From Ascidiella aspersa (taxonomy: Eukaryota), in the NCBI GenBank assembly GCA_963924565.1, contig OZ004607.1, positions 25,606,001 through 25,670,000 on the forward strand: 64,000 bases of DNA, read 5' to 3'. Numbering within the stretch: the first letter of the stretch is position 1; each line of letters opens with the position of its first letter. Position numbers and translations under genes: made by a program. The notes under the pieces are model-generated. The model was not told where the DNA came from. It worked only from the letters and a program-made list of their open reading frames with translations, and did not search any database. This document shows, one piece after another, positions 248-59,691 of this stretch.

Positions 248-3040
248 CGAAATCTATGACGCGACGGCATTTTTCAAACCCAGGCCAGCTTTTGATGATT
301 TCACAGGCTGGATCGGAGTTTCGAACGCAGGCTTTAGCTGCCGAAAGCTTGGTGCAACTTGACTAAAACAGTGTATTTTGTATGTTTAGGGTTATAATAA
401 GCATGTCAATCAACATGTGTTATTAATTTTAAATTAATTTCCACATTATCCAGTCCATCAACAGGGTTGTATCACGCGTTAGTGTTTCCGTGGCCTCGAC
501 ATTTAGGGGCTGGCGTCGTTTTAAAGATTCGCATTCAAGCTAAAGTGAATTGAATACAATTATCTCAAAATGCATTGTCTTTTTCACTAAAAACTTTATG
601 GGCCTTAGGATAAAGTTTAGGAGACACATTTATTTAAATCAGGGGTTCTTGATCGGGGTGCGTGGACAAGTATTGGAGGGTCAATGAAGCACCAATTGAA
701 ATCTTGATAATTGAAAAATGTAATAATTGAAAAGAAAATAGTTCAATTCAAAAAAAAAAGCTTTGGCTCCTTCTTAAATGTACTACGACTTCATTTAAGT
801 TTTTAGACTTTCATTTTAAGATTTTAACTGAAAACAGCAGTTTGTTTTATAATTTATGCCTTTTTTGCTATAATTACATGCTGATTGTAGTCTACGCAAA
901 CTAAAAAATTAAAAAAAAAAACAGATCTAAATGCTGATAACAACACTCATTTTTAAATCATAAAGTAAGAATATTAAACCACTTTTTTATTGTCAGTGTA
1001 TTAAAACAATAAATAAAATTACAGGCTTTACCGAAGGAACTGTCCAGTTGAAACCAAACTCAGTTACATCGTGAACAACTTGGTGGTTGGTCAACATCAT
1101 GTCGTTACTTCGAGATTTGTCGCAGTTCCCTGAAAATAATTTTAAAAATATGTTTAACTGTATGAGATAAAAAGTTCAATGGAATGTTTGTTGATGAAAT
1201 AAATCTTTATGAGCCCAAAACTCGAGAACTTTCATTTTTAAGCATTCTTGCCATACCTTGACCAAATATGTGATAAAACTTCACTACTATTCAAAATTTG
1301 TGAATATTCAAAGACTCACCGCACATTCCCTCTATCCTGCTGTCCCATGCGTGAGCAGAGAGCGAAACGGTTAAGGAATGCTCGGCAGGAGTGAACTTAA
1401 CCTCAAGGCCAATTGTGGAAGCGGCGAACACGAATCTTCGTCCACCCACTACCTTTAGGTTGACTTCAGATGAAGCCACGCCTTCGCCGTAAGGGAAACG
1501 CAGCTGGATTCCTTTGTATGTCGCCTAAACAAAACAACATACTTTGGTTAATTCCATTAACGGGACAAATACGAATTGCTTTATAATGACATTATTACTT
1601 TATTCAAATTTGTATGTTGCTGAGTTTGTCATATAGGATGCAACCAAATATATTATTTTGTTTAATCGGCAATTTTTAAATCTAAATATAGCTGAGGGTT
1701 AATATATTTAACGTTTTACCTATAGTTGAGATTTATATATAGGCCTACTTGTAAAGCTATACAACTTTTCCCGCGAAAAATAGTAAGGATGTCAGATAAC
1801 TATTATAAATAGTCCAATGATGTCATGACTTACGCAATTGCTTGAATAAGTGCACTTAAGTCACTATTTTCCTAAACGAATTGACTCGACATAAAACATT
1901 CAGGCAGAATGGCTTGACTGTCATTTTAACCATTAATTTTACTTTAGACTTAAATTTATCTGCGTTCTTAATTGTAACTTGTCACCCTAGTACCTTGCTA
2001 ATTCATTTTTTTAGTGGTTTACTACGCAGAAAATAATTGCTCAGAATCAAATAAATTTGTCAGCAAAGTTTTCAAATTGGTTTTGTTAACTTGACTTGAA
2101 ATAAGCCTTATACTGGTACTCAGTACAACTTACTGGGTTTTAAAATGACTATAGACAGCAAGCGTGTTCTGTTGACAAATTGGCCTTACCTTTATTTGAC
2201 GAAAACATGCTCAACCGACCTCTTCACAGAAACCCAAGCAAATCTATATTCTATTGTAAGCTATACGTTTCGCTACATGTACGATATAAATATACTTGAA
2301 AACAAAAACAAACAGTGTTTACCGTAAGATCACTGTTCAACTCGTATCGTCGATTTCCCAAAACAACTGTAACTCCGACAACGCAGGACGTGGCCTCTGG
2401 GAAGCGGGGGTCGCATTCTCCGCTGGTTTGGATCACCTCGAACGCCGAGTCTGGGTTGACCAGCGGTGAGGATCGAGCCACGATGTTCTGACATCCGGGA
2501 CTACTCGGGTAGGAATAGTAGAGGCCGTCGAACGTGTGGTAACCGGGGTCGCCAGCCACGTTGCAATAACCTGAAAAAATATAAGTTTGGTTGACCGAGT
2601 GTAAGGATTTAGGGCAGATTTAACAAGGCTTTTTTCGTTCACAAACAAAGTATTGCCGATCTTATTATTCATCTTGCTTGCACAAATGTATTGCCAACCG
2701 AACAACAAATGTTTACCTAAACTTTGCCAAAGTTTGGATCACAACCCCTATGGTTTGACTGTAAATTCCATTAAACGTACATTGAATCTCTTTTGTAATT
2801 CTTGTGGTGTTTACATACGACAATTCCCTTATCCGATCACTCACATTGACATTCCCACTGACAGTTGCACTTGTTGTCGTAGTATAACACCGGGGTCATT
2901 CCGTTTTCGCAAGAGGGCCGGTGAGTGTGGTCGCACAGGAGTCGCTTGTTATGCAACGCCATCGTCCCGTCCTCGGTACAGATCAGATAAGAGCAACGGT
3001 CGTTGGTGTCGGGAAATACCATTTCGCCCTCTTCGTATTG
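248..3040 (-). CDS. D4 assembly (D4N-VWD-start of C8)
   Basis: 2845-3040 ([26 protein letters not shown], resembling the VWF D4N cysteine pattern), 2323-2570 ([14 protein letters not shown]), 1320-1524, 1032-1129 (GMCGNCD) and 248-362. Confidence 0.85.
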
Positions 3041-6000: not shown

Positions 6001-9000
6001 CGCAAAGAACGTTGGATTGCATCTTGCCTTGGTTGCTCTGTATAACACACTTTCGTAAGCTTGGCGTAGTGATTTAATTTTTAGCTTTCATCTAGTACAT
6101 GATTTCCTGTTGGAGATGAATACAAAAGGATACTTTAATTAGGAAAATACACGAATTAATGAAAGACAGAGTATGTATATCGATACTTGCAAAAAAACAA
6201 AAACAAACAAAAAATGGATAAAAGCTTTTCCCTAATAAAACGTTAAGTTGGTTCCTTTTAGCAAGATATTTCAATTTTTAGAACTTCTAGTTGAAATTCA
6301 AAGTTTTATCTTAATGACTGTATAATTTTGCCACAAATGGTAAAAAAGTTGTTATGATTTTATGCGTTTGTGCAGACTTTAATTTCTTATTGGTAGTGTT
6401 CTTTAAAGAAATACAAACAAAACTTACATGACATGTGAGATTGTGACCTTGGTAACCTGGTCTGCAAATACCACTGAAGTTGCTCTCATAGGACGCCCAG
6501 CGTTCGAAGTCACCCAAGTTCGACAAAGTTGGAACGTGATTACTGGTAGGCGCTGCGTATCAAAGATTTAGTTTATCAGAAATCCGCATTGCGCATTGAT
6601 CGATTTTTTTATTTTAAGCTATATTTACACTTTAAATATGCACTTTAAAGCGTAATAGAAGCGTTAAGCGACGTAGTAAAACAGTTTTTTTTTCTTACTT
6701 GTCCAGTAGCACTCGCATGGTCGTGTAGTTGCAATTCCAGTCGTAAACGTTGTGATCGGTATCGAAACAGCTAAACGACACATATGCTTGTTTTAAAAGG
6801 TGAACAAATACAAATTGCTAGACAGAAAGTGGCACGGGAGTTTTATCGTAGTAATGCAATTTAAGTTCGCCGAGAACACCACCAAGACACAAATATTCTT
6901 CGGAAAAGCAAAATATTTACATGCAAGCAACGAATGTAAACGGCGTAGAACAGTGGTTCCAAACCTTTAATGGCTAACGGCACCCCTCAAAAAAAAATAG
7001 ATTTTCAGAACCCCCACTGGAATTTTCGTTGAGCATTTTACTGAAATGTCACTACAAATGGAACTGGAACAACACAATCAACTTTAAACATGTGGGAAAA
7101 TGTCATTTGATATAAATCGCACTAGTTGTATAAAAAAGTTTAGTAATTAAGCAAAAATCGGATTCCTAAAATACCTATCGGCACCCTTGAGCATTAGAAA
7201 TAGCACACCAGGGAGCCGTGCCACCCAGGTTGAGAACCAGTGGCGTAGAGAACATCAAAACAATGTATTTAGAATTTTAACGGCGCAAATCATGTCTGAC
7301 TCTACACAACAGCATTTTCAATGGTATACTGTTTCACATTTAACTATACAAACACTTTAGTCCTCTCATTACACTTCACTCATTGCACATCACGCAGGCT
7401 AAAGCTCGCACGCACTCGAATACTCAGGTGGCACGCAAACTTGGTGGCTGACCGCCGCCGTGTGGTTCTGGAAGTCAAGAAGCTCGTAGTTCTCCACGTA
7501 AGTAATTGAGCCAAACGACTTGAAAGGCTCCAGGGTTACGGGGGTGGCTGCCTGCAAACCGACCGTCACCAGGTAGACTGGCTCCGGGTGGGTTTGGGCC
7601 AAATCGTCAAAGCGACGAAGAGGTTGGTCCAGAGAGTCCTGTGCGAGTGAACAAGTTGATAAATGATGGTCTTACATCTGTATTTGTTGCGCTCTAAACT
7701 GGGTTATCTTCGAGAAATTTTTCTATTTAGCAAAATTATTTTTCTTTTACCCCATATTATAAGAAATTGTAAAGCTTGCATTAACATAAAAACAAAATAG
7801 GGTAAACTTGTAAGTTTTAAGCAATTAAAATTAATCAATGAAAAAATGACGTGGTGTCAACACGGACGAGATAACCAGATACAACGTCATCAGTTAATCC
7901 GCGTAAATCGCTTATTTATGAGGAGTCCTGAGACTTGGCAAACCAAAGAATACTCATTACTCAATGCAGAAACTCTTACCCGCGATCGAGCATCGGTTAT
8001 GAGCAGCACAACCCAAGGGACATTGGGCCTTGCTCCACGGTCGCTTCTCAGCACCTCGTCCATAGCCACGCTTAAGGCACGTCCGGTGTTGGTCAGCCCG
8101 CTGCGGTCGCGCAGTTTCTCGGTGGCGGCGAGGACGCCTTGTAGCGTTTGGTTTTGTGCGAGGCCGAGAAGAATTTGTGCGTTGGTGGCGTAACTTACGA
8201 TGGACACCTGTTTGAGAGGATAGTGGTTTGAAGCGAATGGGGTTTCGTCATTTACGTGTTCCGTGAACCTGTTTTGACATTTAGTCATTTCTGTAGCGAA
8301 TTTTTTCTTTTTGATCAAGGTAAAGAATATCATTTTTTTTTATCAAGGTTAGAATATCAAGTTTTACATTTATGATTCTACTTGGAGAATTAATAGAGGA
8401 TACCTTATTAAACAACATAAGTCTTTGGATAATAGAGCAGTCTGGTTGGTCATCATGCCATATTCAATAGTTCGACTATCCAGATACCTTATGCATGGTG
8501 GTATTAAATAGCAATAAAACGCATTTGCTTGACAGCTTTATATGTACATTGTAAGACATTACAATTGACTTTGTTAAACTAATTTTGGCGATAAAAAACA
8601 ATATCGTTTGTTGTACAGTATACGTTTCACAGGCTTGTCATAATTTTCAATGCTTTGTTTAAAAATACGTTTCTCTAGTTACCCGCGTGTCGTTTGGTCC
8701 GATGGTCAACGTGGAAAGCACAATGTCCAAGAAGTTTTGTATCTTTTTAAGTCTATACGGCCCAACTGCAGAAGAATCGACCAGTATCACCAAATCATGA
8801 GAGTAAGAACATTTAGGAATTGGACCTGCGAACATAGTTATTGACAGCCCTTTAAAACACTTAACAATTCCAAACAACACAGATAATCCTAAGGTATGCA
8901 ATACACTGTTCTACAAAATTGCTTGCAAAATAAGTAATGTACAGTTACAAATCGAAACTTCTAAGTCAGATATTAGAATACTTAATGCATTACTACAGAT

Positions 9001-12000
9001 TGTAAAGCTCTACAATAACGCATTTCAAAGATTTAACTTAACTTGTCGGTTTAAAACAAAGGTGATGCTACGAACCAGGTGTTTGAATTTCGAGCGGATG
9101 AGAGCAAAGATGCTTGAAAGCGTATTCGACCGGTCTTGGATGAGAAGTGTCGTTAATGAGGTCTGACGAGTTTGCGTAGTAAGCAACATAAAGCCCAGGA
9201 ACCGACGATCGTATTTGGTCGACTGGCGTTTTCATGAGTGCAATTACAGTCAACAGGCCAGGAACGTCGTTAAGATGTTCTTCAAGGCGCCGTAGCGGGG
9301 CTGTAAGATCCTTTACGTAAAAGTGCACAAGCGTAGACAAGGTTTATATATTTCGAACAAACGCTCCAACTCCCATTCGGCGAAACTTATCAACACTTCG
9401 CAGGTCGTACATCTTTCTAACGTAAATTTTTTGCTTTAATAATTTTGTACCTTATCAGTAGGGCGAATACTTTTAGACTTGTCAAAAAAAGTCAAAATTT
9501 TGTCAAAATTTACACGTTAGGTCAAATTTTGTCAATATTTTTGTAAGTCAAAATCGGACAAAAATGCACATAAATCGCGTACAAAATTAAAAAAAAAACT
9601 AAAGTCAGCTTTTTGAAATTGGTCGTTCGGTTATTTTGAAATTTATCTTTCATTTTATCAAAAAAAAAATAGTTTCGATATAAGTTCAAAGTCATTTTAA
9701 CCGTATTATATCTTTATTAGAGCAATATACAGTATACAAAACGCGTGATTAACGACGCCTAGGTTATTTAAATCAATGTATTTCTAACAGGTCAAAATTA
9801 TGTCAAAATACATTTTTTTCAGGTCAAAATTTCCTATTTTTTTGGTCAAAAAATATTCGCCCTACTTATCAGTGTATAACATGGCTTGACGGAAGTTTGA
9901 AATGGATGTATTTTGTATTTGTCAACTGACGACGCGTTACCTCATTGGCCGAGCTGGTGATCATAAGCACGGACCACGGCTCGCCATTCGGCCTCGGCGT
10001 GAGAACGTCTGTCACCAGCTTGTTGACAGCGACTTTGGTGTCGGTGCGATCCGTCAAGGATGGAATGATGCTGTCGATCTTCGTCAGAATCGTGTCCAGA
10101 TCGGGGGAGTCCCCAATGTTAATTAACATTTCTGGGGTATCCGCATACGTCATAAAGGCAATCTAAAATCATATGGGGTTAAAAAATAGCCACTGAATAT
10201 TAACAACCAAACGAAATATAGAAAACGCTGACTTGAAATCAGGGCTGCGGAGTCGGATTAGGGGCTCGAGTAGGACTATGTAAATCTTCTCGATCCCGAC
10301 GTGCGCATGGGCATTACTAAGTTTCGAAACATTAAAAGCCGCAAACTGTAAATTGTAAAGAATGGCAAAATGGTTGAATATTTTCCAACCATGTATTTAT
10401 AAGTGAGTGGGTTCTATTGCACCCCTGATTTGTGGATTTCTGAATATCTCCTGTACAGCTCCGTTAATATTTTCCTGAATAGCTACGTAAATTGGTAAAA
10501 TACAGGCTAAAGAGTCAGAGCTGGACTCGGGACTCGACGAAATTAAACGTTTGGCCGGAGTCGGACCCGGGTTATTTTTCGGAGCCCTGCTTGAAATATA
10601 CTTCTCTACAGTAATACTTTTCATGAAAATATGCCTAGAGATAAATGTGAAAATCTTACCTGTGTTTTATTTTTTCCGAATTCGAAACGCTTCAACAACA
10701 CTTTTAAATATTTTTTTATGTCTGCCAATTGATTCAAATCACAATCGGATATGTCCAGAGCGATGGCAATATTGGGATATTCTTTACAACTTGGTGGTAC
10801 TGTGGTGGCTTCTACAGTCGTTGGACCAGTTGGTGTAACAGTTGTTGGACCAGTTGGGCCAATAGTTGTTGGGCCAGTTGGACCAGTAGTTGTTGGACCA
10901 GTTGGCCCAGTAGTTGTTGGACCAGTTGGGCCAATAGTTGTTGGACCAGTTGGCCCAGTAGTTGTTGGACCAGTGGGCCCAGTAGTTATTGGACCAGTTG
11001 GTGTTGTGGGTGTTGGACCAGTTGGAGTTGTGTAAGCTGAAAAGGTTTTGTGAAATTACTTTAGATCAAAATAGTACATGCGCACAAGAACAACATTTTT
11101 AATGAATTTATTGTTTTGAAACACCTTAAAAAAGAAATAGAACGTAATAACCTTCCGTTGTCGTTGCGTTGTAATCCCGACAAATCTCATACTGAACGCG
11201 TTCAATAAGATGTGGCAAGTCGTTGACGGAGTTAAATGAAAGAGCTCCTGTGTTGTTTGTCCATGTGGTTAACTTATTGAAGTAAGGGATAACCGACGGA
11301 CCAGGGCCCACAGTAATCAAACGAACCCGTTCTTCTCGCAACTCATCAACCTCTTTCAAAGCATCGGCTTTTGTGTCTTTCGGCAGATGGTCAAGCATCA
11401 TTATCTGCACAGTTTATTAAACCTTATTAGTAGTTAGAATCTTTCTTTTAACGAAAGAGAATCAGCATGGACTAGGTAACAAATATCTTAGGATTTGTTG
11501 TTCAGACCCAGAAGCGGAAAGTAAAATGTACAAACCAGAATCTTGTCTGCGTCTCTCCGGACACCCTCGCCCAGCAGCAAATGGTGTACACTGTAATCAA
11601 TTGCAGGCACCAGGTTGCTGATACCGCGCAATCTCGCAAGGCCTTCAGGCGAAATCAACTGGTCCTCTATGGCCTTGAAGGCCGTCTTTTTCTCATAGGA
11701 GTTTCGAAGGTTAATGATGAGCTGCGGAACAGGGCCGATTTCGACAACTGCGAACCGTGTGTTGAGATCCTGCGTGAAACAATTAATATAATTGTTTTGT
11801 AGTAAATGGTAATTACCTTTTAGTTCAAAACTCGCATTTTTATATAATCACGCACTTCACCAGTGGTGCGATTTCACTGTTTACTATGTCACAGGACAAA
11901 GAACATTACCAAAAATTAGAAAACTCACGTCCAGATTTGTTCGCCGAATTACATCTTTAATAAAAGAACGAGTCAGAGCCAGGCCGTATTCGGTCATAAG

Positions 12001-48000: not shown

Positions 48001-51000
48001 AACAATTGTTTTAAGTGTTGAAAAGTTAGCTACGTTTTATTTTTACCTTTTAAGACAAAGAGATGATTTTGTTAAACATCTACCATTATTTGTAAAATGA
48101 CGATATCCGTTTGGTTGGGGATTCGCAGCGAAGCAACTCTATATCAACCACTTTACATCCTGAATCGACTTCGATATGATATTTTCGGGCATTCCTATAA
48201 GTTTGAAATGGTATTTCTATACTATTTTATTCTTCCCTCGTGCACTTTCCAATACTGCGAGTAATTCGACACAAACAATTCGCTGGATTATGATTTTGCG
48301 GCCCTAACTTCTCCTGCAAGGACCGAGACGAATGACATCATCATTCTCATTTGGCAACCATGCGAATCTTGTGGCGACAATCAGGTTCGGATACGTTTAA
48401 CAATTTCTTGTTTCCCCAATTAAATGTCAAATATTTTAAGAAAGTGCCATGCCGACGGGCGACTTTGCCATACACCCAAAGCCCAGGCATGCGTACTTGG
48501 CACAATAAAACAAAGTTGCAGCATATAGTTTCCTTTGTAGACATTGTTTGGTTATTTTTGCAATGTTTGGACTCGAGAACGTTCATTAGGCACTCTTTAA
48601 AAGCCGCCGACTAGTAATGAGGAAACAAATCAATCGATTTATAAATTATGTGCATTAAGAACAATGACCCAGTTTATCCTCTTTTATTCGGTTTGAGTTG
48701 TCTTTATGCGACTGCAAAATGATCAAAGCTAAAACACTACCTCGCTTGTGATTTACTTGGCATGGCTCAAACAACTGATCGGAAGCTGTGTCGCGGCAAT
48801 CCGAATTAGCCTTCCACATGTTGGCGAACGTCGCAGGATTTTTTTCAACCATGCCTGGAAAATAACAGTTAGGATGTAAGTAGTCTGATATTTTGTCTGT
48901 AGCATCCACACATTAGTATTGGTAATTTACATTAAAAACTTGTTCATTGTTTGTTTGGGTAAGTGATTTGAGTTTTCCGCTGTTTAAACCTCCTAAATTG
49001 TCGACAATTGATAGTTGCCTTAACGTTGCCACACAAATCATCTGGGAAATAATTTTATTTTGTTACAATTCAAAGTTTGTTCACCTTTTTGTGCGTACTA
49101 TTCGAAGGTTTCGTATCGTGTTTTCCTACAACCATTGTTCAGAAAATCTGCTACGTTTTATAACTTTACGTTAACTTAATAAACTCTTTACTTTTCTATT
49201 CAGTACTTTAGCCTAGCAATTATAGATTGGCCTGGACAAAGTCGCATAAAGAATAAATGAAGTTTTTCTCTACCATTAAAATTCCTCATGTCGTTTATCT
49301 GGTTGTCATCATAGTTTCCGCATAAGCCGCACAACTTTCCCATCCATCTAAAAACAAAATTCAAATTTTATCACAAATACAAAAAATTATCAATTTTTTG
49401 ATTTTAGTAACTTTGTTTTTTTTGTTTTTTTGTTAAAAAAACAATATAATATTTTAACTTTATTCGTTTCAATCATCTGATAGCAAAAACCAAGCCTGAA
49501 ATTTATTACCATCAGACCTTCATTTTGTTTACACTCTACCTCCTATCAGCCTTAACGTATAGTCTTGACGTGCCATCCCAATCAACAGTAATGCCAATAT
49601 CAGAGCTAATCTGAACGAATGAGGAAGACACCTGTTGTATCTGGAAAGAATCTGTTGAAGCACAAAGTTGATTATGATTTAAACTAAAACCTTAATTTAT
49701 AAAACATTAAGATATCTTTGTTTTTATGCTTGAAAACAAGGTTAATCATAGTCAAGTATCAACAAATTAGTAAAACTAAAACTTCAAACTAATAAATTGA
49801 AGTACTGGTAATAAAGAAGTGATTAGTATAACAACGAAGGCTACAATGCAAGAATACTGAATGCTGGTTAGGTGTCGCAAACACCCGATGATCCCTAGTG
49901 CTATAGACAAAACAAACGTAGCAGTTAAAGGTTTTGTTGATTGGCGTATCTGCCTTGTGTCGTGATTGAATTGCCGTGAGAAAGCGCCATCGGCTCAACA
50001 ACATAGTAGGCCCCGGGACAACAGTCGGAAATCATCGAAAGATGTCTAGCGATAATTCGGGACATTTCTGCATTTTCCAACCGGTACCAGGCAATCGGTG
50101 CAGTCCGCCCAAGGATTCGTGCGTTGGCCTACAAATCGTTCGACGAACCCAAACAGGGGATGGAGAACTACACTCGACGAAACAAAGGAAGCAATCGCAA
50201 CGACCAGCAAGTGCTTGTGACGCAGTAGACTAAGTGGCAACAGCGTGCGAACTATTGCGAGTAAGGCGTATCATAAACCCGCGTGATCTGACTGTAATCG
50301 TACAACAGCAGACTGCATCATAAGCTATGTTTTTCTGGACAGAGTTCCATGTCCAATTACAGACCGGTCGAAAAGGGCAGTCCAATTACCGGAAGCGATT
50401 AATCATGCATTGCGCCCCTGTTGAAAGTCGCCTCACCTCGGATGAAAGGCAGTCCCACAATCTTTTCGTCCACGGACACCGAATGTCCTTGGCTTAGCCT
50501 GATCGTGACTCGTCGGGGTCGCACGGTTCTGTTCGAGTTTCTCGACGCCCTAATGCCCGGCGCAATGTTGAAAGCAACGGTGACGTCTTTGGTGCAAGTG
50601 ACCATCGTGTCAGCGCCGCATATCGTGTTGTCCACCACCACGCTGTTTTTTAACCATGTATTTAAAAATGCATGCTTTACTCGCAAATTAATGTCCACCT
50701 TTCACTTTAAAAGTGGAAATCTTTCTGAGTTGTCTATTTAAACACCATTGTAAATTAGGCGCGTTGCAAACAATGCAAACAAATAAACAATCACATAACA
50801 AAGACACTATTTAAAATTCCAAAAAGAATTCAGCGGTACAACCTAAAGATATTTATAAAAAAGAGACAGCGCCTTTTTTGTCCTACACAGAATCAATTTT
50901 ATCTTGGCGACTTATTTTTAAAACTAGCTCCTATATGATTGCTACCTAAAAAGCGAACTGTGACTGCAGTCTTTCGTGAAGGTATATTGACACTCTCCGT

Positions 51001-54000
51001 GCATTGTGTAGATCTGTCCGTCGAAGGTTGTGTAATGAGGGTCACCAACTGCTGAGCACTCCGAAGGACAAGACAACCTTGTGCAATTCCACATTGCGCT
51101 CTGGCATGTGCTAATAGAAAGAACAAATATTTTGTACCATACAATTATTGCAGCCACTTTCTTGTGAACAATTTTTGTAATCTATTTAAACTTTTGAGGT
51201 TTATCACCACTTGCCAGGATAAGTAATAACAAACATAGTGTTTCCTATGGTATAATGTAGATTGCTACACTTTGTAACAGATTTGACATGAATTGGTCGT
51301 GTACACTTGAGCTGATTTAATTTTTTTTTAATTCAAAATTATCTTTTGTTTTTCATTTTCCGCGTTTGGGACACGCTATAACATTTTTACCCAATGTCTT
51401 TAAATTGATTAAACCCGAAAATTTTATAAATACACCTGTTTTAAATATCGACAGCAAAACCTACCACGAGGAACAGTCCTGCTCGAGAACGTATCCCACT
51501 GGGTGTTCGAGGGAGTTATGGATGCAGGGACACTGGTCCTCCGGGACGCAGTGTCCGTCGTGGAGAAGAGTTCCAGGAGGACACACACATCCGTCCACGC
51601 AGTGCTCGTCACAGTCCGTGTCTGGGGTGACCAGGTTATGGCAGGACTTGGGGCACGAGCTTCCGCACTCCTCGTACATCATCCCCGTGTCGCAAGTGAT
51701 CGCTGCGGGCAAATGCGTATGACTTTTACAGCAGTAAAAATGCCGCCGAGAATAAACTGCAATGCTTAGGTACGCGCTTTGGAGACACATTAAGTTTTAT
51801 ACGTTACTGAATTTGCGAGCCTGGACGCAAAAATAAAGCGAGCAGTTCGGAGACACAAGCTTATTGCATGGCATAAACAGTACATGCTGTAACTAGAACT
51901 AAATAAAAACTAAACCGTTATTCATAAAGAGACTTTTGAATCAGACGTATGCTAATTCCAAAATAAGTTTCGAATAAGTTTGCAACATTGTCTAAGTCAG
52001 TACTTAAAGCTTTTCTCAATCTTTCGTCAGAATTTTGGTAGGTGTAATCATGAACAAGCAAAACGATGGTGGCCAACTTAAATACGTTTAACTAAAGCTC
52101 TTACGGCAAAAGTTTGGTCTTCTCCAGTCTGGCTTGATGTCGGTTTTCTCCATACAAAGGCGAGAATATTGTGACACGGCGGCACAATGGCACTCCGGCT
52201 GAAGTGTAGTCTGTAAGCGTGAATATAACACGAAGAAATGTAACTTTCGTAAAGCGAGAGATTGAAATTTATCGGTTCTTATTTGGTAAAACAAATGTGT
52301 TTACACCTAAAATTAGAGTTAGTTGTGTTGGGTATATAAAAATGTATTCAGTGATTTACTACTTACCTTTTTTGCGTGTTTAGTATCGAAAGAGGTTCGA
52401 TTTGTACGTTCACATTTTAAATGCACTCATGATTTTAATTAAATCTCCACCCGTATAGCTTCGTCAATAGAACAATACCACAGCGCTTAAATATAAGATC
52501 GTTAAAATCTAAACCCACCTCACATCTACAAAGATCCGATACGCAGCCATCTTCAAGTGGTGTCGGATCCACCCCGGCTCTAATGCAGTCGGCAAAAGCG
52601 CCATTTTTCGAGATGAATATCATGCAAACTTTACGAATTTTCTGAAAATGTGTTTATTTTACAACATGTTTAAAACTTCAAAACAGACGAACGAAATAGT
52701 GTTACAAGTCGTTTAGGTGTTATATGGTTAAATATTATGTTACCCATTTCGACAATGTATATCATCAGATCGCGTGAATAACCGGGCTTTTACACTATAT
52801 CGAATCCTATTAAATCATGAAATATAAAAGCCTATATGTAAACCAGTCGGCACAGTTGTTTAAATTAAATTACCCAGCGCCAAGAAAGGGAACAAAATAT
52901 TACCTCTACATTTTCAGCGCTGACTCCTTTGCAGTCGTATTTTAACTTGCTCACTTCCTGGCAATGTGTATGTATCCCCCTAACGTTCCATTCCCTGGCC
53001 CAAAACAAGGTGTTGCGGGCCGGCGTTTCTAAAATACGATTACGCATTAAAACATGATTTTATAACCTGTTCAATTGATGGCGCTAAGTTTTTATATGTG
53101 AATAAACGTTTGGTTAAATTGGTTTTTATAGTTTATAATTATATCAATATATAGAAAAATTAAGCTCAGTTCAAAGGCATTAAGCTCAGTTCAAAGACCC
53201 CATACAAACTTAAATGAGCCAAAATTTTCGCAACTTAATTATAACAACCCATATACGTATTGGTGTCACAAATCCGTAATACTGTAATTATAAGATAAAT
53301 AATAATTCAGGCAAATACGGAGAGCGACCCACTGTCTTTCAGTTGCATATCGTTCGAAGAGTTGCCGTCTGCGTCGCCACAAAGCCCGCAAAGTCTGCCG
53401 CTGTAATTGTTCTCGTGCAATTCGATTTCAGCAACCCCCTTGCCGTTCCACAGCAGTATTATGCCAATCTTGAGAGTCACTCGCAGGTATCGCCCCACCT
53501 TGGAAATGGAGAACATCGGCTGGGCGTAGGTGTTGTGGGTGAGTCTACGAACAGCAACGTATAACGATAGTGTACCAACCAGTAATATTAAACACAACCC
53601 AAAGAATAACTTCTGTTGTTTAAACATCAAACAACACTTTATTTGTCGTCACAATCACAATTTCGTTCACACGAGCGAAACACCATACACGGTTACTAAA
53701 GTTTTAGGGCGCTCTTTAAATAGTAGGCTAACAAAAAACATAAAGTAACTAAAATATTATGAAGCGCCAAAAAAATGAAAAACTTGGCCAAATATTGCCA
53801 GTCAACTAACAATGGAAATGTCGAATATTTCTGTCAAAAGTTCAACCAGGTAAATGTTGCTAATTATTTACTTCAGAATACATCACTTATTTATCTCAGG
53901 TTATTTACAGAAATGGTAATTTAGTGAGGAATATTAAGTAACTAAAAGGTATGCCTATTATTACTTACACAGTTCCGTTTAGCAAGGCCACGTTATTGGG

Positions 54001-57000
54001 TAACAAGGTGAGACTAGGAGAGTTTCCAATGTCAACAACCAGAGCCATAAAGTCCTTAGTTGCGTTGATGAGTGGTTTCAAATCGTCGTGGAGCTTTAGA
54101 ATATCAAAAAGTTAATCCTACATTGCATTTTAAAAGATATTTAATTCGTTTTAAAAAAGTATTATAACGAAGGCTAAATATATTAAGTTACTTTGCTGCA
54201 TTATGATAACAAGTAAGCAATATTTTGGAATGATTTTTGTGAGCTATAGGTATTTATCACTCTCATTCCCGATGTACCACGATATAATGCGGAACCGCGT
54301 TATTCATAATTACGTTGTCGTATAAGGTTTGATTGGAGATCTCGCCGGTCTCCCGTTCAATAGGTGCGTAGTCCTCGATGTTCTTTGACAGCTCGATGCT
54401 GAAAGTGTGGTCAGGGCAGTCCTGGAGCATTGTGTAGTGGCAGCGCCCGGGAAAGTCGTAGGAGGATCCGTCGAATGTGCGAATGTGGCGGCCGCTCCAG
54501 ATCGCACAAGTGGCTTCGGCGTGTCGTTTTCGTGTCGCTGTGTTGTCCGGAAAGTTTTCATGTTATATTTTCAAAACAAGTATTTTTGCCTGCGACCACA
54601 ATTTAATTTTTTGTGCAAAACACTGAACAGTTTTTATTCAAATATAACACAACAACATCATTTTAAACGTTGTATTACGTCAGGTTTTTTTCCAAAAACT
54701 ATAGTCTTTTTTTACTGCGATCACTATTTAATTGTTTGTTCAAAACATTGAACAGTTTTTGTTCAAATAATAAAACAACAACATCATTTTAAACGTTATA
54801 TCACGTTATATTGTTTTCCCAAAACGTGTTATCACATTCGTTATTGATCGTAGAGCAGTGTTCATTAGGGTTGGCTTAGCCTACCTAAAATTTCTGCTAC
54901 AAAAAATCTTTAAATCAACAAACTTGTGGCTGTCACGTCCGAGGACCGTGATCCGAACAGTATTACAAGTAAAACCACAGCCTATCCTTTAGCAAAACTG
55001 GGGTACGGGTACCTTACAAAATATGAAGGCTACTTGACTATGGCATTTAAGATTCAGCTAAAACTAACTTGTTATAATGAATAGTATATATTTTAAAGTA
55101 ATGTTTTGCGACATTGTTGGTAAATTGCAAGCTATATATTACTAAGTTCGCAGTTGGTTCCAGCGTATCCCAAGCCACAGAGACATACATCAGGAGAGAT
55201 ACACGTTCCTCCATGTTGACATCGCTTCGTGCAAATAGCTGAAACAATCGTAAATTAGTTTTTATCCTAGTAAAAAATAATTACAAAAAGAACAATATTC
55301 TGCATAAAAGGTGTTACTTTTTTTTAACCATAATTGTATTATGCGATTTGGTATGTCTCATTTTTCTGACCAAATACTGTGGCTGTAAAACTCCCCGCCT
55401 AAATTATTGCCAGGATGAAACTGAATTGCACTCAGAGTAATAAAAGTGTATCGTTATCCAGGCTGTTAAAGTAGAGCATCTAAATCAGCGGTTTCCAACA
55501 AGCGGCACGCGTGCCAAATGTGGCACGCGACCTAATAAAAAATGGCACGCAAGCCCTCCCCAAAAAAACTAAAATTGTTATTTCGCCATTTGCCAAAAAA
55601 GTTCAATTTGTTATTCAGCCAATTGTCAGAAAATACTAAGTTTGTTATACATCCAATTGTCATTGTTTGTTCACAATATAAAACAATCGCGGCAATCACG
55701 ACAACCAACAATTACTTTTAATATGGTAACATTATACTGTGTGAAGGCTAGCATTCATATATATATATATAGCTTGGTGTTAAGAAACAAGAAGTCAGCT
55801 CACCGAAAGACACTTTGATGTAGTGATGCGCATTTCTACACGACATTTTTTTTTTCAAGTTTAAATAAACGTTCTTATTTTTGGTAAAAAAGCGCTTTTA
55901 TGATTAAAAAAAATTGGTTCGGTTACGAAACTTTGGCACGGGAAGAAGTTATAAGATAAAAATTGGCACGCCGGCATGTTTGAGTTGGACACCCCTGATC
56001 TAAGTCATAAGTTTACTTGTCTTATACTTACGAAGCTCACAGGAGTGACCATGCCATTTCCCCCTGCATTTGCAAGTATCTGGTGCAACACATTCTCCGT
56101 CGTGTTTGCAATCAGGACTACAATGTGCTATTAATAAACGAAATATAAGCAATATTAGAACAACATATACATGATGAGAAAACCTTGAATCCATATGTTA
56201 GATCAGTACTTGTCAACCTTTTTTGGAATAGTACACACTTTTCCGTTTACTGAAGGTCTTACACCCCCAGTCCACGCAATGCACTTAACCGTTATAAAAT
56301 AACTAGTTAGTACCTCACAATAATGATTTATCAAGATAAACATTTGATTATGATGTCACAAATAGAACATAGCATCTTATAAGTAGGGCGAATATTTTTT
56401 GACCAAAAAAATAGGAAATTTTGACCTGAAAATTTAAATTTTGACAAAGTTTAACCTAAATATAATTCATTTTGACAAAATTTTGACCTGTTAGAAATAC
56501 ATTGATTTAAATGAGCGCGACATTAATCACGCGTTTTTTATACCGTATATTGCTCTAATAAAGATATAATACGGTTAAAATGACTTTTAACACAAATCAA
56601 AACTAAATTTTTTTGATAAAATTGAACGATAAATTTCAAAACAACTGAACGACGAATTTCAAAAAGCTGACTATATATTTTTTTTTATTTTTGTAAACGA
56701 TTTATGTGCATTTTTATTTGATTTTGACTTTACAAATTTTTGACAAATTTTGACCTAACGTGTAAATTGTGACAAAATTTTGACTTTTTTTGACAAGTCA
56801 AAAAATATTCGCCCTACTTATAAGCTATGTACGCTTAAATACATGTTGTGCCATGTATTTGTACACTACAATTAGTCAGGTAATAATACTAATTATTGTG
56901 ATACCTGTTTATAGGCTTATTGTTTTGCGGTATCATTAGACCCTAGTACACCCCATCAATGTGGTATATCCTTTAACAATTCTGGCACGCCCTGGGATGC

Positions 57001-59691
57001 ATAATACACCCGGTTGAAAAGCGCTGTGTTAGACTAATGTATATTATACATTCAACTTTAGGGCGTTGGTGTAACAACAAGATGTCCTCATATACTTACG
57101 CTGATCGCATACATCTCCTGTCCAACCCGCAAAACACTGGCAAACGTCTCGCTTCGAGCAGACACCATTCGCGCACGGGGGATCGCATATCGCTAAAAAG
57201 GACACATAATTGTTTTTTAAACGTAAGTTTTTTAAGTATATAAAATGTTTTTAGGTTATGCTTGTTTATTTTTTATTGTTATAAATAAATAACTATGATA
57301 TTGACTATTCTGGTAATTAAAGTTTTTATTGCGGTTTGAAGGACAAATGTTTACCACACGTTGAATGTATGTCTTTTTGGTGTATGAAATTTGGTGGATT
57401 GATTTACACGTATTTTAAAAAATAACACATGAACAAAAAAACTACTTTCCTGTCTGTGTTACTTTTTTTGTAAAAGTTAGCTTTAGTTGTCACCTGTTTG
57501 GCATACGGTTCCGGTAAAACCAACCGAACAAGTGCACACGTTTGGTTCACTGCAAATTCCACCGTTTATACATTCAGGGTTGCAGATAGCTGAAAACGAA
57601 AGCGATAAAAAAGGGTGTATTTAATTTTATCGGTAAAAAAGGTGTATATAAATATGTATATAAAATATAAAAAATTATAAAATATGGTTGTCAAACTTAA
57701 GCCTCAGGAGACTCCTGAGTATGCCGCGAAACTTTTTGAAATAAGCTGTAGTTCGTATTACAAATTTGCATGCCGATAAGCATGCAAGACTTACCCACTA
57801 TTACTTTAAATTACTTGTTATATATAATATTTTTTCATTATCTTGCTAGTTAGTAAGAGTTATTGTTAATTATTTATGTATTGGGTATTTTATATATAAA
57901 TAGAAAGTTTTCCGCTATTTTTGACTTTTTGTTATTCCCCTGCAAGCTAAAGGGCCATATGGCCCCATGGTTGGAAACCCCTGGCTTAGGCTACGACTTA
58001 CGTGCGTTGCACTCTACTCCCTTCCAGCCGTGTTCGCAAAAACAGAGGTTCGGAGCCTTGCAAGTGCCGTGAACACAGCTGTTTGCACAAGTAACTGTAT
58101 GACAAATAGATTTGCATATCAACACTAAAATCCAATAAACACCTATTCGGGTAAAAAATCATTTAACAATATTTTCAGAAATAGGTGTTTTTGAATAGTA
58201 TGTTCTCTTTAGCGCAGGGTTAATCGGAGGTCAAATTTAAAAACGTTAGGATGCCTCAAAATCGGTGCTAGCCGATATTGACTGTGTAACAACTGTTACA
58301 ATTTACCTTATTCATATTTTAGGACCAAAACTACAGGTATTGCAGCAAGATTTCGCAAAGGGCGAAAAAAAGCATGACTTTTATTCCAAATAAACTGATT
58401 TCATAGTTTATAAAGCGTTGTACAAGATAGACTGCGCATATCTAAGTTTCAAACAAAATAAAGTGTAACAATACTTACATTGTGTGCAGTCCGGTCCGAA
58501 CCAGTCGTTAATGCACGCGCAGGTGTCGGTTTTGATGCATTGCCCGCCATTTTTGCATGGCAGTCGGCACAAAGCTAAAACATAAACGCAAAAATGAATT
58601 AATATTGCGTCACACTCTGGTTAGCCTAACCAGCAGTCAGGTATGACCATGTGTATTAATAGTTTAAATGAGCGTTCAGCCGTTCACCTAACTAAGCGGT
58701 CAGTTATTATTTGACCCCACCGAAACACCGTATCACTGCACCATATTACCCTGGCGAACCGGGAACCGAACAGCACCCTTTTTGGTTGTTTAGGTTTTCT
58801 TACTTAAAGTATTTATGCTATATTTTGTGGCACTTAAAAAGAGCTTAGTAGGTACTTTATTCAGAATATTTAAGCAATCACGTTTATTTCCAGCTTGATC
58901 CTGCAGCTGACTTCTTCGAACAAAACCTACAAGGTCTTCACTTGCATTTTTAGTTTCTTTTAAAATCGAACCAGCCAAGTTGATAAGTCCTCCAATACGT
59001 GAACTGAATAAAATAACGAAAATTGTTTGAATTTTTCCATCAATATCATATATTGATAGATAAAGTGAAATACGTAAAAATCACGCTGATTAAAGTTTTC
59101 TCTAAACTAAAAAAAGATCAATCGTTCAATCACACAGCCTTAAAACATTAGTTAAAATATCATTTTTTCCTTAAGGTGGACTTGCCTCATAATTCATTCT
59201 TGGTTTCTCAGGACTAATTTTAAAAGTTAAATGGGAGGCATTTTGAACTATATATACCTGTTGTTATTTTGAGCACTCGCCAACAGGAAACCTAAAAAAA
59301 ATATAATGGTTACGCAACATAGAAAAATAGTCAGATAGCAGTAGGCTAGGTATACATCAGCATATCTCACCAAGATTTGCTAATTAAAAACTACAGAGAA
59401 ACTTCGTTAAACCTCGAAGAACGAGGCGAAAGATAAAATCAATAGCCGTACAACACACATAATAATGCTGCATTTTTAGTTGATTAACTTCAAAAATATT
59501 TTCTTATTTAAAATCTGGAGTAAAACTAATGGTTATAACGTGTTCTTTCTGGATGTGCAAAAGATTGAAAAGGAAATTTAAAGCGGTTTAAGTCAACAAC
59601 GATTTCGTACAAAATCTAATAGCTATACCTTACCAGTTTGACATAAGGTTATTGCTAGAAGCGTTGTAAGCATCCAACGATCCGATTTCAT
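248..59691 (-). CDS. Giant multi-exon VWF-like/gel-forming-mucin-like secreted protein (SP-EGFx6-D1-D2-D'-D3-VWAx24-CysD-VWA-D4...); 3' end lies outside the window
   Basis: About 114 GT-AG exons joined with consistent phases and no stops. Contains VWD motifs (GDPHY.TFDG, CGLCG), C8/TIL cysteine patterns and 25 VWA folds. Domain order parallels VWF D1-D2-D'-D3-A..-D4. Confidence 0.9.
3610..5542 (-). CDS. VWA25 and Thr-rich linker exons
   Basis: 5367-5542 ([14 protein letters not shown]), 4841-5014, 4290-4530; linkers 3829-3981 and 3610-3707. Confidence 0.85.
5869..6770 (-). CDS. Mucin CysD-like domain (three exons)
   Basis: 6699-6770, 6428-6552 and 5869-6037 join to CECYWTTPTSNH...GDFERW...GICRPG...CDLN...[11 protein letters not shown], matching the CysD pattern C.W..., GD.E and CYDY.I.V.CC. 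Confidence 0.75.
6951..7242. mobile_element. hAT (Charlie-like) MITE
   Basis: TIR cagtggttccaaacc...ggttgagaaccagtg; flanks gcgtagaa/gcgtagag. Confidence 0.8.
7416..12175 (-). CDS. End of VWA21 and VWA22-VWA24, with a Thr/Pro/Gly repeat linker
   Basis: 11929-12175, 11536-11769, 11152-11404; 10660-11036 (repeat, then [15 protein letters not shown]), 9941-10162, 9076-9310; 8683-8825, 7980-8207 ([14 protein letters not shown]), 7416-7638. Confidence 0.85.
9459..9864. mobile_element. hAT-type MITE, family A, copy 1
   Basis: TIR tagggcgaata...tattcgcccta; perfect 8-bp TSD cttatcag; internal gtcaaaattt subrepeats; reverse-complement homolog at 56384-56816. Confidence 0.9.
10240..10589. mobile_element. 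hAT-type MITE
   Basis: TIR cagggctgcgga...tcggagccctg; perfect TSD cttgaaat. Confidence 0.85.
10820..11030 (-). repeat. Coding 24-bp tandem repeat, (GPTGPTTT)n
   Basis: Repeated ttggaccagttgg.cc.gtagttg units within exon 10660-11036. Confidence 0.9.
12600..15181 (-). CDS. Giant exon B (2582 nt): end of VWA17, VWA18-VWA20 and most of VWA21
   Basis: ORF 12572-15220. Domain starts [36 protein letters not shown] and [10 protein letters not shown]. Confidence 0.88.
15439..20979 (-). CDS. VWA15, VWA16 and first part of VWA17, with linkers
   Basis: VWA15 20849-20979, 20450-20627, 19852-20151; linkers 19219-19290 and 19077-19145; VWA16 18626-18774, 17877-18054, 16944-17426; linker 16426-16521; VWA17 15965-16140 and 15439-15651. 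Confidence 0.85.
17128..17235 (-). repeat. Coding 12-bp repeat, (xVNG)9
   Basis: [36 protein letters not shown] in exon 16944-17426. Confidence 0.9.
21210..29903 (-). CDS. VWA10-VWA14: recently duplicated five-exon modules
   Basis: First exons at 29758-29903, 28059-28204, 26127-26272, 24100-24245 and 22254-22399 ([17 protein letters not shown]). Units 10-13 are 146+178+288+30+84 nt = 242 codons. Confidence 0.9.
21530..29903. repeat. Tandem segmental duplication, about 5 units of 1.7-2.0 kb including introns
   Basis: Near-identical exons and alignable introns recur at spacings of 1846, 2027, 1932 and 1699 bp between first exons. Confidence 0.92.
29970..35230 (-). CDS. VWA7-VWA9 with Pro/Gly insertions and Thr-rich linker exons
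   Basis: VWA7 35085-35230, 34757-34937, 34003-34422; linker 33720-33860; VWA8 33494-33645, 33208-33385, 32085-32714; linker 31809-31940; VWA9 31573-31703, 31244-31424, 30575-30871; micro-exons 30165-30188 and 29970-30014. Confidence 0.85.
32350..32560 (-). repeat. Coding ~21-bp repeat, (GGGPPMG)n
   Basis: Repeated ccaccacctcccatcggaggt units in exon 32085-32714. Confidence 0.9.
35729..39206 (-). CDS. VWA5 and VWA6 with linker exons
   Basis: 27-nt exon 39180-39206; VWA5 38567-38715, 38123-38309, 37680-37967; linker 37425-37484; VWA6 37141-37268 (VDASAS), 36442-36678 (GTTNL, VFTDG), 35729-35993. Confidence 0.85.
39617..42795 (-). CDS. Giant exon A (3179 nt): Thr/Pro linker plus VWA1-VWA4
   Basis: ORF 39597-42773. 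Four Cys-bracketed VWA folds start [35 protein letters not shown] and [12 protein letters not shown]. Ends at a gtgag donor at 39616. Confidence 0.88.
40335..40525 (-). repeat. Coding 36-bp repeat, ([12 protein letters not shown])-like, about 5-6 copies
   Basis: Seen in the ORF 39597-42773 translation between VWA3 and VWA4. Confidence 0.8.
43049..46195 (-). CDS. D' and D3 assemblies
   Basis: 46079-46195 and 45804-45951 (TIL'/E'), 45205-45343 ([10 protein letters not shown]), 44821-44968, 44550-44710, 44297-44407 ([12 protein letters not shown]), 44031-44159, 43716-43872 (GGDCECFC), 43430-43591 and 43049-43163. Confidence 0.9.
46364..51110 (-). CDS. D2 assembly (VWD-C8-TIL-E) ending in a basic furin-like segment
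   Basis: Exons 50946-51110 ([14 protein letters not shown]), 50437-50642, 49540-49651, 49274-49347 ([10 protein letters not shown]), 48741-48854, 47658-47873 (C8), 46740-46977 (TIL) and 46364-46446 (...GGRGGRRN). Confidence 0.9.
51465..54537 (-). CDS. D1 assembly (VWD-C8-TIL)
   Basis: Exons 54314-54537 ([25 protein letters not shown]), 53969-54093, 53333-53544 ([12 protein letters not shown]), 52904-53028, 52519-52641, 52105-52210 (C8) and 51465-51702 (TIL). Confidence 0.9.
55143..58574 (-). CDS. Six single-exon EGF-like domains
   Basis: Phase 1-1 exons of 93-96 nt at 58479-58574, 58002-58094, 57494-57589, 57100-57192, 56032-56127 and 55143-55238, e.g. [31 protein letters not shown]. Confidence 0.92.
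55486..55997. mobile_element. hAT-type MITE
   Basis: TIR cagcggtttccaac...gttggacacccctg; subterminal ggcacg repeats; flanks atctaaat/atctaagt. Confidence 0.8.
56204..57026. mobile_element. Older hAT-type MITE hosting family A copy 2
   Basis: Ends cagtacttgtcaacc...ggttgaaaagcgctg; flanks tgttagat/tgttagac. Confidence 0.7.
56384..56816. mobile_element. hAT-type MITE, family A, copy 2 (opposite orientation, nested)
   Basis: Same TIRs as copy 1; perfect TSD cttataag. Confidence 0.9.
58927..59691 (-). CDS. Exons 1-3: signal peptide and N-terminal segment
   Basis: 59634-59691 [19 protein letters not shown]|gtaag; 59258-59291 [11 protein letters not shown]; third exon ends at 59003 ([18 protein letters not shown]...), with a donor at 58927 or 58882, both phase 1. 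Hydrophobic core ends in an A-S-A cleavage motif. Confidence 0.7.

Follow-up and report, generated by a model that had tools for sequence, protein, structure and literature searches.

A von Willebrand factor/mucin-type locus in the ascidian Ascidiella aspersa, predicted to encode one secreted protein with 25 VWA units between its D3 and D4 assemblies

How von Willebrand factor (VWF) arose from a mucin-like frame is a question on which the locus described here plausibly bears, judging by its predicted protein. According to Hynes, VWF is a vertebrate or chordate novelty that arose when three VWA domains were added to a mucin frame (PMC3308698). The window, by which we mean the whole stretch of 64,000 nucleotides that was analysed, corresponds to G000:C1:25606001-25670000 (contig OZ004607.1) of the 308.6-Mb assembly of A. 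aspersa, and all features of interest lie on its minus strand. We read this locus, with a probability of about 0.7, as one very large gene of the VWF/gel-forming-mucin family, encoding a secreted, disulfide-polymerising protein in which 25 VWA beads form a rod, and which would serve as a structural or adhesive matrix fibre. From the translated exons, the most likely domain order is a signal peptide, six EGF-like modules, D1, D2, an RRNR site, D', D3, twenty-four Cys-bracketed VWA units with Thr/Pro linkers, a CysD-like module, one further VWA unit, D4, VWC-like modules and a C-terminal cystine knot (CTCK).

The ab initio model places the gene at G000:C1:25599508-25665691 (minus strand), spanning ~66 kb, with ~120 exons encoding ~8,400 residues. 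Exons were chained with a program of our own, which combines codon log-odds, GT-AG sites and phase compatibility, was retrained twice and was anchored on profile hits. The resulting GT-AG, phase-consistent chain of about 8,400-8,480 codons agrees with the size of more than 8,000 residues proposed in the first-pass annotation; it is an estimate, in which EGF5 and two VWD2 exons were missed and added by eye, and a few doubtful small exons were chosen. More than 25 kb of coding sequence is free of in-frame stops inside the exons, and every exon curated by hand in the VWA and CysD region is open, with AG/GT flanks. No tRNA genes occur in the window. The span initially given, 248-59691, held at its upper end, where the ATG and signal peptide exon begins at 59691, whereas position 248 is merely the end of an exon and the gene runs 6.5 kb further. 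All searches were run exon by exon, and split VWA units and the CysD candidate were therefore scored piecewise, while the genome-wide Pfam scans cover the complete assembly. In the genome-wide VWD scan, VWD pieces fall at 54.5/53.4, 51.0, 45.2/44.4 and 2.4 kb of the window, which are the positions expected for D1, D2, D3 and D4, respectively.

The amino-terminal part of the frame, up to D3, is composed of the following features (window coordinates):

59634..59691, minus strand: first coding exon, with the ATG and signal peptide (donor CTG/GTAAGG, phase 1)
58574-58479, 58094-58002, 57589-57494, 57192-57100, 56127-56032 and 55238-55143, minus strand: six EGF-like exons, phase 1-1 each
51465..54537, minus strand: D1 assembly, comprising VWD1, C8-1 and TIL1/E1
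54537-54314, 54093-53969 and 53544-53333, minus strand: VWD1 (Pfam VWD), the last exon with CGLCG
52628-52519 and 52210-52105, minus strand: C8-1, matched by Pfam C8 in two halves
51702-51465, minus strand: TIL1/E1, 112 bits to VWF residues 294-368
46364..51110, minus strand: D2 assembly, comprising VWD2, C8-2, TIL2 and E2
51110-50946, 50642-50437, ~49691-49539 and ~49367-49203, minus strand: VWD2 (Pfam VWD), with CGLCG
47917-47658, minus strand: C8-2 (Pfam and solved-structure matches)
46977-46740, minus strand: TIL2 (Pfam TIL, E=9e-13)
46446-46364, minus strand: end of E2, from the exon model
46079..46446, minus strand: D2/D' junction, reading GGRGGRRN/R GATCPPGQ across the 46364/46195 intron
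46195-46079 and 45951-45804, minus strand: D' (TIL'-E', no VWD), the second exon matching positions 31-55 of the Pfam TIL profile
43049..45343, minus strand: D3 assembly, comprising VWD3, C8-3, TIL3 and E3
45343-45205, 44968-44821, 44725-44550 and 44437-44342, minus strand: VWD3 (Pfam VWD)
~44162-44001 and 43872-43716, minus strand: C8-3, aligning to C8-3 of MUC5AC, MUC2, MUC5B and VWF
43591-43430, minus strand: TIL3, with QTECMWHY
43163-43049, minus strand: E3, from the exon model, its end lying in giant exon 1

An in-frame stop is located four codons upstream of the ATG at 59691, and the phase of this exon fits the first EGF exon. Each EGF exon has a Pfam EGF-family match (E 5e-8 to 2e-4), several of them above the curated cutoff. 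Among solved-structure sequences, the D-module exons match the corresponding modules of VWF, MUC2, MUC5AC and MUC5B, and the predicted layout, with three N-terminal VWD-C8-TIL assemblies and a VWD-less D' before D3, is that of VWF and the gel-forming mucins. The translated exon model furthermore predicts a furin-type propeptide site, RRNR, between D2 and D', where VWF has RSKR, an identification made at the sequence level only. We know of no gel-forming mucin that is cleaved after D2. Both propeptide VWD domains (D1 and D2) carry CGLC, and GDPHY is present in the VWD of D2 and D3. The C8-3 module keeps a CGC...GGDCECFC block (the CxCxC motif) and TIL3 keeps the TEC-MWHY (C-x-W-x-Y) cysteine, while the extra Cys just before WRTP that is common to the C8-3 of MUC2, MUC5AC and MUC5B is absent, as it is in VWF. 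In VWF these same C8-3 and TIL3 regions give intermolecular disulfides. The C8-3 and TIL3 cysteines of MUC2 likewise form intermolecular disulfides (PMC6739602).

Between D3 and D4, where VWF has its A domains, the exon model predicts the VWA array:

39617..42795, minus strand: giant exon 1 (3,179 nt), with the E3 end, Thr/Pro linkers and VWA1-VWA4 in a single open frame
30575..39206, minus strand: VWA5-VWA9, three exons each, with separate Thr/Pro linker exons
21530..29903, minus strand: VWA10-VWA14, the homogenised core, a ~2 kb DNA repeat including introns, with exons of 30/84/146/178/288 nt per unit
15439..20979, minus strand: VWA15, VWA16 (carrying an (NGKV)n insert), exons 1 and 2 of VWA17, and linker exons
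12600..15181, minus strand: giant exon 2 (2,582 nt), with the VWA17 end, VWA18-VWA20 and most of VWA21
7416..12175, minus strand: region from the VWA21 end to VWA24, from the exon model and profile matches
12175-11929, 11769-11536 and 11404-11152, minus strand: VWA22
11036-10660, 10162-9941 and 9310-9076, minus strand: (TGPTGPTT)n linker and VWA23
8849-8683, 8207-7980 and 7638-7416, minus strand: VWA24 (exon B, Pfam VWA 2.2e-12)
5542-5367, 5014-4823 and 4560-4290, minus strand: VWA25 (exon A, Pfam VWA 8.6e-6)
3981-3829 and 3707-3610, minus strand: Thr/Pro-rich linker exons before D4

A recount of the units, with 24 before the CysD-like module and one after it, returned the total of 25 VWA domains that had been claimed at the outset. 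The end of E3 and VWA1-4 share giant exon 1, and the link between D3 and the array is therefore independent of any predicted splice. Further along, VWA5-16 are each built of one exon of class A, one of class B and one of class C (phases 2/0, 0/1 and 2/1, respectively), and the linker exons are of phase 1-1. Every one of the 25 units has a Cys a few residues ahead of its first strand and another at its end, and in the units of giant exon 2 these bracketing cysteines are invariant in nine colinear sequences. An intact DxSxS motif is found in VWA6 only. The linkers are 10-130 residues long, and the linker-only exons are composed to 56% of Thr+Pro+Ser. Low-complexity inserts occur inside three of the domains: a Pro/Gly/Met-rich (GGGGPPM)n insert of ~110 residues in the third exon of VWA8 (32085-32714; 24-nt tandem repeat at 32362-32550), a shorter Pro/Gly-rich insert in the third exon of VWA7 (34003-34422), and an (NGKV)n insert, derived from a 12-nt repeat at 17141-17234, in the third exon of VWA16 (16944-17426). 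These inserts may form flexible or elastic loops.

A jackhmmer self-search from one VWA unit recovered only units of the same exon. With the units too divergent to find each other, a profile was built from unrelated proteins, comprising 1,049 VWA domains, mostly collagen-VI-like, from which the closest colinear relatives (presumed orthologs) were excluded. Run exon by exon (E<0.5, Z=1000), it matches 23/25 units in the correct profile order, with E-values from 2e-18 to 0.37, while its best match on the opposite strand, at E=7, is noise. For VWA25, which follows the CysD-like module, the three exons score 6.9e-8, 0.071 and 5.4e-4, in profile order. The Pfam VWA family scores above its cutoff for V1 (2.9e-7), V3 (6.9e-12), V18, V20 and single exons of V24 and V25. 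Compared with solved-structure sequences, VWA18 has collagen VI alpha-3 as its sole match at E<=1e-3. An AlphaFold2 model of giant exon 2, with the orthologs as alignment, contains four alpha/beta blocks with disordered linkers between them, and the fold evidence for V20 and V21 as VWA domains is strong. The V20 model superposes on collagen VI N2 with Z 22.8 (root-mean-square deviation 2.4 over 182 residues) and on VWF A1/A2/A3 with Z 19-20, the matches to A1, A2 and A3 being no better than those to collagen VI or integrin I domains, and V20+V21 align jointly to two VWA domains of the mussel protein PTMP1. The model of V4 alone is of low confidence (predicted local distance difference score 54); Foldseek returned no significant match for it, and an exhaustive structural search ranked VWA folds first, at Z 6-7, which is suggestive only. 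From sequence and models together, all 25 units are predicted to adopt the alpha/beta VWA fold.

The module between the twenty-fourth and twenty-fifth units is as follows:

6770-6699 (RPCECYWT), 6552-6428 and 6037-5869, minus strand: probable divergent CysD in three exons

It contains the GDFE (LGDFERW) and C-x-D-Y-x-V-x-V-x-C-C motifs. Pfam Mucin2_WxxW matches its last exon only (E=0.089, profile positions 49-88), as the sole family for that exon, and in pairwise comparison exons 2 and 3 are colinear to positions 10-33 (E=0.018) and 80-89 (E=0.012) of a high-scoring CysD of the same genome. On this evidence 6770-5869 is probably a divergent CysD.

The carboxy-terminal end of the frame extends beyond the window into the 10 kb below it (L001):

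248..3040, minus strand: first part of D4, with a Cys-rich exon, VWD4 and the start of C8-4
3040-2845, minus strand: Cys-rich exon in the place of the D4N of VWF
2570-2323, 1524-1320 and 1129-1023, minus strand: VWD4 (Pfam VWD), with GDPG
362-248, minus strand: start of C8-4, with 248 as exon end
L001:9966-9835, minus strand: rest of C8-4 (Pfam C8, E=2e-8)
L001:9446-9229, minus strand: TIL-like exon
L001, minus strand: several VWC-like exons, recognised by their cysteine patterns
L001:4219-3987 and 3672-3511, minus strand: cystine knot in a split exon, with CxGxC...CSCC...CDC (DAN 0.0022, Cys_knot 0.031)
L001:3508-3510, minus strand: stop codon

The predicted C-terminus, with a D4 assembly, VWC-type modules and a cystine knot, is again that of VWF and the gel-forming mucins. 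It had been advised to look beyond position 1 for VWC repeats and a knot, and VWC-like exons and the knot are present there; the Pfam VWC family gave no match on single VWC-like exons. The VWD of D4 starts with GDPG in place of the GDPH of mucins. In MUC2 and MUC5AC the GDPH motif is cleaved autocatalytically. The architecture claimed earlier, running from a signal peptide and six EGF modules through D1-D2-D'-D3, 24 VWA units, CysD and VWA to D4, was recovered element by element on the minus strand and in the places given, with CysD as its weakest member.

An ortholog of the region from VWA15/16 to VWA22 is found in a second species, on two Joint Genome Institute (JGI) metagenome contigs (Ga0210059_1003864 and JGI24159J19872_10001755; L024/L025) that are 99.99% identical to each other and represent one species. 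These contigs are presumably host (ascidian) DNA in metagenome samples. Their order agrees with that of the Ascidiella gene over 19 kb, a unit of three exons being followed by the equivalents of V16 and V17, a giant exon of four units, V22 and a linker of Thr/Pro tandem repeats, and the amino-acid identity is 48%. Units that correspond one to one in an ortholog of 48% identity imply that most of the array predates the split of two quite distant species; the contigs end at the linker before VWA23, and the comparison covers the array up to that point. An exhaustive search with giant exon 2, which is single-copy and lacks a paralog in the genome, returned one colinear sequence of 871 residues at 49% identity and several at 24-30%. 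All of these sequences come from metagenome or raw-read assemblies, and a member of one cluster of distant homologs bears a run-accession label that we take to be that of a marine metatranscriptome. A repeat of the search with giant exon 2 added nothing, and for giant exon 1 (1,058 residues) no homolog of 582-1,851 residues was found. The named matches to giant exon 2 that were looked up are all collagen-VI-like or a single amphioxus protein, and VWD hallmark motifs are present in 0/184 of the retrieved proteins. The amphioxus match, of 6,024 residues, was considered as a protein of the same architecture and rejected, a partial cluster member of 4,112 residues having the order CUB-EGF-VWAx15-Sushi without VWD. 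Membership in collagen VI was likewise rejected, as no triple-helix exons were seen.

Within this old array, the units VWA10-13 recur every ~1.9-2.0 kb, and their DNA is 91-95% identical between exons and 74-89% identical between introns. Amino-acid identity to VWA12 amounts to 85-98% for VWA10, VWA11 and VWA13 and to 59-81% for VWA14, while the flanking V9 and V15 are only 7-37% identical in an ungapped comparison. Near-identical units among highly divergent flanks point to recent tandem duplication or gene conversion in an otherwise old array, and a core of four to five units was thus duplicated or homogenised recently.

Vertebrate VWF resembles the Ascidiella gene in the order D1-D2-D'-D3-A-D4-C-CTCK, in CGLC in D1/D2, in the furin-type site after D2, in the C8-3 CxCxC and TIL3 cysteines, in a C8-3 without the mucin-type extra Cys and a D4 without GDPH, in mostly non-functional metal ion-dependent adhesion sites (MIDAS), and in short O-glycosylatable linkers around the A domains. 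VWF A1 and A3 are bracketed by cysteines, and the units of the array share this terminal Cys pair. Unlike VWF, the Ascidiella gene has 25 A-type units rather than three, is ~3x longer, includes six N-terminal EGF modules and a CysD-like module, has Thr/Pro linkers between all units, and is found in an animal without vertebrate-type platelets. The three A domains of VWF are A1 (GPIb), A2 (with the ADAMTS13 site) and A3 (collagen), and to none of them do the 25 units here show specific similarity. With MUC2, MUC5AC and MUC5B the gene shares the D1-D2-D'D3...D4-VWC-CTCK frame, O-glycosylatable Thr/Pro-rich segments and possibly CysD, and for its VWD2 and C8-3 exons the scores to these mucins slightly exceed those to VWF. 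It departs from them in its globular VWA centre, in the RRNR site, in a D4 without GDPH, in the missing extra C8-3 Cys and in the want of a long central proline/threonine/serine (PTS) region, its Thr/Pro stretches being 10-130 residues long and set between globular VWA units. Summed over six D-module exons against four solved N-terminal constructs, the scores are ~558 bits for VWF, ~499 for MUC5AC, ~476 for MUC2 and ~448 for MUC5B, which is not a phylogeny; the whole of the VWF lead is due to the D1 and D2 TIL/E exons (112 bits vs 51-82 for the mucins), the VWD1 and C8-2 exons tie, and VWD2 and C8-3 lean to the mucins. Collagen VI alpha-3 and multi-VWA matrix proteins such as mussel PTMP1 have tandem VWA domains and provide the best sequence and structure matches of the units; they lack VWD/C8/TIL assemblies and a CTCK, and the gene for its part lacks the triple helix of collagen VI and has Cys-bracketed units with Thr/Pro linkers between them.

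A second locus of the same genome combines the same domain types. Along more than 100 kb at G000:C1:4277000-4382000 (plus strand; L026-L038), EGF, VWD-C8-TIL, VWA and CysD exons lie on one strand, in the order EGF, repeated VWD-C8-TIL with canonical single-exon VWA between, calcium-binding EGF (cbEGF), CysD x2, ~70 cbEGF exons, (VWD-C8-TIL)x2, VWA-EGF-VWA-EGF-VWA and CysD x3. The strongest VWA matches of the genome fall in this region (C1:4.28-4.38 Mb), which is another giant gene or several, and could be a CiVWFL-type locus. It differs from the gene described here in its FCGBP-like repeated VWD-C8-TIL, its ~70 cbEGF exons and its canonical, high-scoring VWA and CysD, and it is without a D1-D2-D'D3...D4-CK frame carrying a VWA array in the A slot. 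The Ascidiella gene stands out in that its D1-D2-D'D3...D4-C-CK frame is complete and holds the array in that slot.

Several points weigh against the reading of the locus as a single VWF/mucin-family gene with 25 VWA beads, and they are best considered together with the alternatives to which they belong. Beyond the two giant exons, the joins between exons are predicted ab initio, and since the chaining enforces phase compatibility, any chain that the algorithm returns is in phase by construction. The locus might then comprise two or more adjacent genes on the same strand, such as an N-terminal gene of mucin type, a matrix gene with many VWA domains and a D4-CK gene. We regard this as very unlikely, given that the last module of D3 and VWA1-4 share one open exon, that the stretch from 43 kb to 2 kb showed neither an internal signal peptide nor a terminal exon, that the cassettes keep the same structure and phases all along the array, that the ortholog keeps the order over 19 kb, and that a separate D4-CK gene would be without a signal peptide. 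The copy number of the near-identical VWA10-13 also depends on the assembly, and with 2-kb repeats of such identity and period the true number might differ from 25 by a few units in either direction, and could vary from one individual to the next. Mis-assembly of this kind seems improbable, as the copies differ at many positions and are spaced 1,846-2,075 nt apart, as distinct assembled copies would be, and the window is free of N runs. Four units, V2 (0.0082), V4 (no match), V19 (0.052) and V21 (no match), are without a significant Pfam VWA match. The CysD is statistically marginal: the genome-wide PF13330 scan, with 74 CysD pieces, does not include the candidate at 6770-5869, and a profile built from 20 CysD exons of the genome scores it at 6.4 bits, the noise level, so the evidence on a CysD between D3 and D4 is divided, with the motifs, a marginal Pfam match and the pairwise matches on one side and these two scans on the other. 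The D modules appear, from their exon scores, intermediate between VWF and mucins, and the VWA units, by the same kind of comparison, seem closer to collagen VI, with no particular affinity to VWF A1-A3 over other VWA domains. Moreover, the joint occurrence of VWD, VWA, CysD and EGF is not unique to this gene, and its suggested function and tissue are drawn by analogy from other ascidian VWF-like genes.

The last of these sequence comparisons bear on how the gene is related to VWF, for which two histories are weighed. The second giant locus, which combines VWD, VWA, CysD and EGF, makes lineage-specific domain shuffling a live alternative: a mucin-family gene of the ascidian lineage could have gained its VWA array independently, by exon shuffling from ascidian VWD/VWA/CysD/EGF genes, with a convergent likeness to VWF. 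We consider this a serious possibility at somewhat less than even odds. It accords with the mixing of the four domain types at C1:4.28-4.38 Mb, the modular phase-symmetric exons (EGF and linker 1-1, VWA in three-exon cassettes), the collagen-VI-like units, and the N-terminal EGF repeats and CysD-like module, which are not VWF features; it has to contend with an insertion point identical to that of VWF, the furin site, the VWF-type C8-3 cysteine pattern, and an array that is old and conserved between species. Alternatively, the gene may be a true tunicate VWF ortholog, whose VWA domains entered the slot between D3 and D4 before tunicates and vertebrates separated and were expanded from a few to 25 in ascidians, with EGF and CysD added later. 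The shared frame with VWA units in the A slot, the furin-type site, the D1/D2 TIL/E scores, the C8-3 and D4 without their mucin-type features, and units Cys-bracketed like A1 and A3 all speak for this history, as does the unpublished ascidian proto-VWF mentioned by Hynes (PMC3308698). It nevertheless appears doubtful, as the units are not specifically A1-A3-like and find their sole solved-structure sequence match in collagen VI, the VWD2 and C8-3 exons score higher to mucins, shuffling of the kind seen at the second locus seems easy in this lineage, and Lang et al., in a large survey, reported no apparent invertebrate VWF orthologs, with 17 multi-VWD proteins in Ciona (PMC4948705). A complete VWF/mucin frame with a furin-type site and VWA units in the A slot, conserved between ascidian species, makes the origin of VWF testable, while the free shuffling of VWD, VWA, CysD and EGF in at least one other giant gene of the genome tempers any simple ancestor story.

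If the product of the Ascidiella gene behaves as VWF and the mucins do, the cystine knot would dimerise the tails in the endoplasmic reticulum, the D1-D2 propeptide, with CGLC in both VWD domains, would promote head-to-head disulfide bonding of D3 in the Golgi, and a furin-type protease would cut the propeptide off at RRNR. The result would be a linear disulfide-linked polymer whose middle consists of 25 disulfide-stapled, mostly MIDAS-less VWA beads with short O-glycosylated spacers. A polymer-forming, beads-on-a-string secreted protein had been proposed before, and the signal peptide, CGLC, RRNR, the C8-3/TIL3 cysteines, the cystine knot and the Thr/Pro linkers agree with it at the level of sequence. 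Such a protein might be a structural or adhesive fibre of a secreted matrix, and would provide a natural example of a very long disulfide polymer whose beads are 25 stapled globular domains, which would be relevant to the mechanics of mucus nets and to biomaterials. Of the possible sites, the mucous feeding net of the endostyle is favoured, because ascidian VWF-like genes are expressed in the glandular zones 2 and 4 of the endostyle, with wound or rejection plugs as an alternative role. The Ciona genes CiVWFL1/2 are endostyle-specific according to a passage of PMC8462739 that cites Sasaki 2003, and the Botryllus homolog (BvWF) is expressed in endostyle zones 2 and 4 and also in macrophage-like cells during rejection (PMC2527998).

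It had been cautioned that an ortholog might already be partly described, and rightly so, in that the literature already contains CiVWFL1/2 (PMC8462739, PMC2527998) and a mention, in 2012 and only as unpublished data, of an ascidian proto-VWF (PMC3308698). CiVWFL1/2 and BvWF are, like the present gene, ascidian and called VWF-like, and they and the proto-VWF of Hynes are likened to it here by name and description. No description of an EGF-headed, CysD-bearing family member with 25 VWA domains was found in the accessible literature. We further considered, as an unlikely proposal, that the gene is the tunicate counterpart of VWF, that the A insertion into a mucin frame is pre-vertebrate, and that its original job was to form polymer fibres of the endostyle mucous net or of wound plugs. 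If true, the hemostatic VWF of vertebrates would descend from a net protein used in filter feeding and would have been trimmed to three A domains.

Two minor features were observed besides. Short AT-rich tandem repeats lie 5' of the first exon, at 62463-62582 and 61421-61465, with 21/63-nt and 23-nt units. Elsewhere in the genome, a cellulose-synthase-like match at G000:C5:19610700-19611167, of a kind that in an animal fits a tunicate genome, scores 27.5 bits, above the cutoff, and is located in an open frame of 647 residues.

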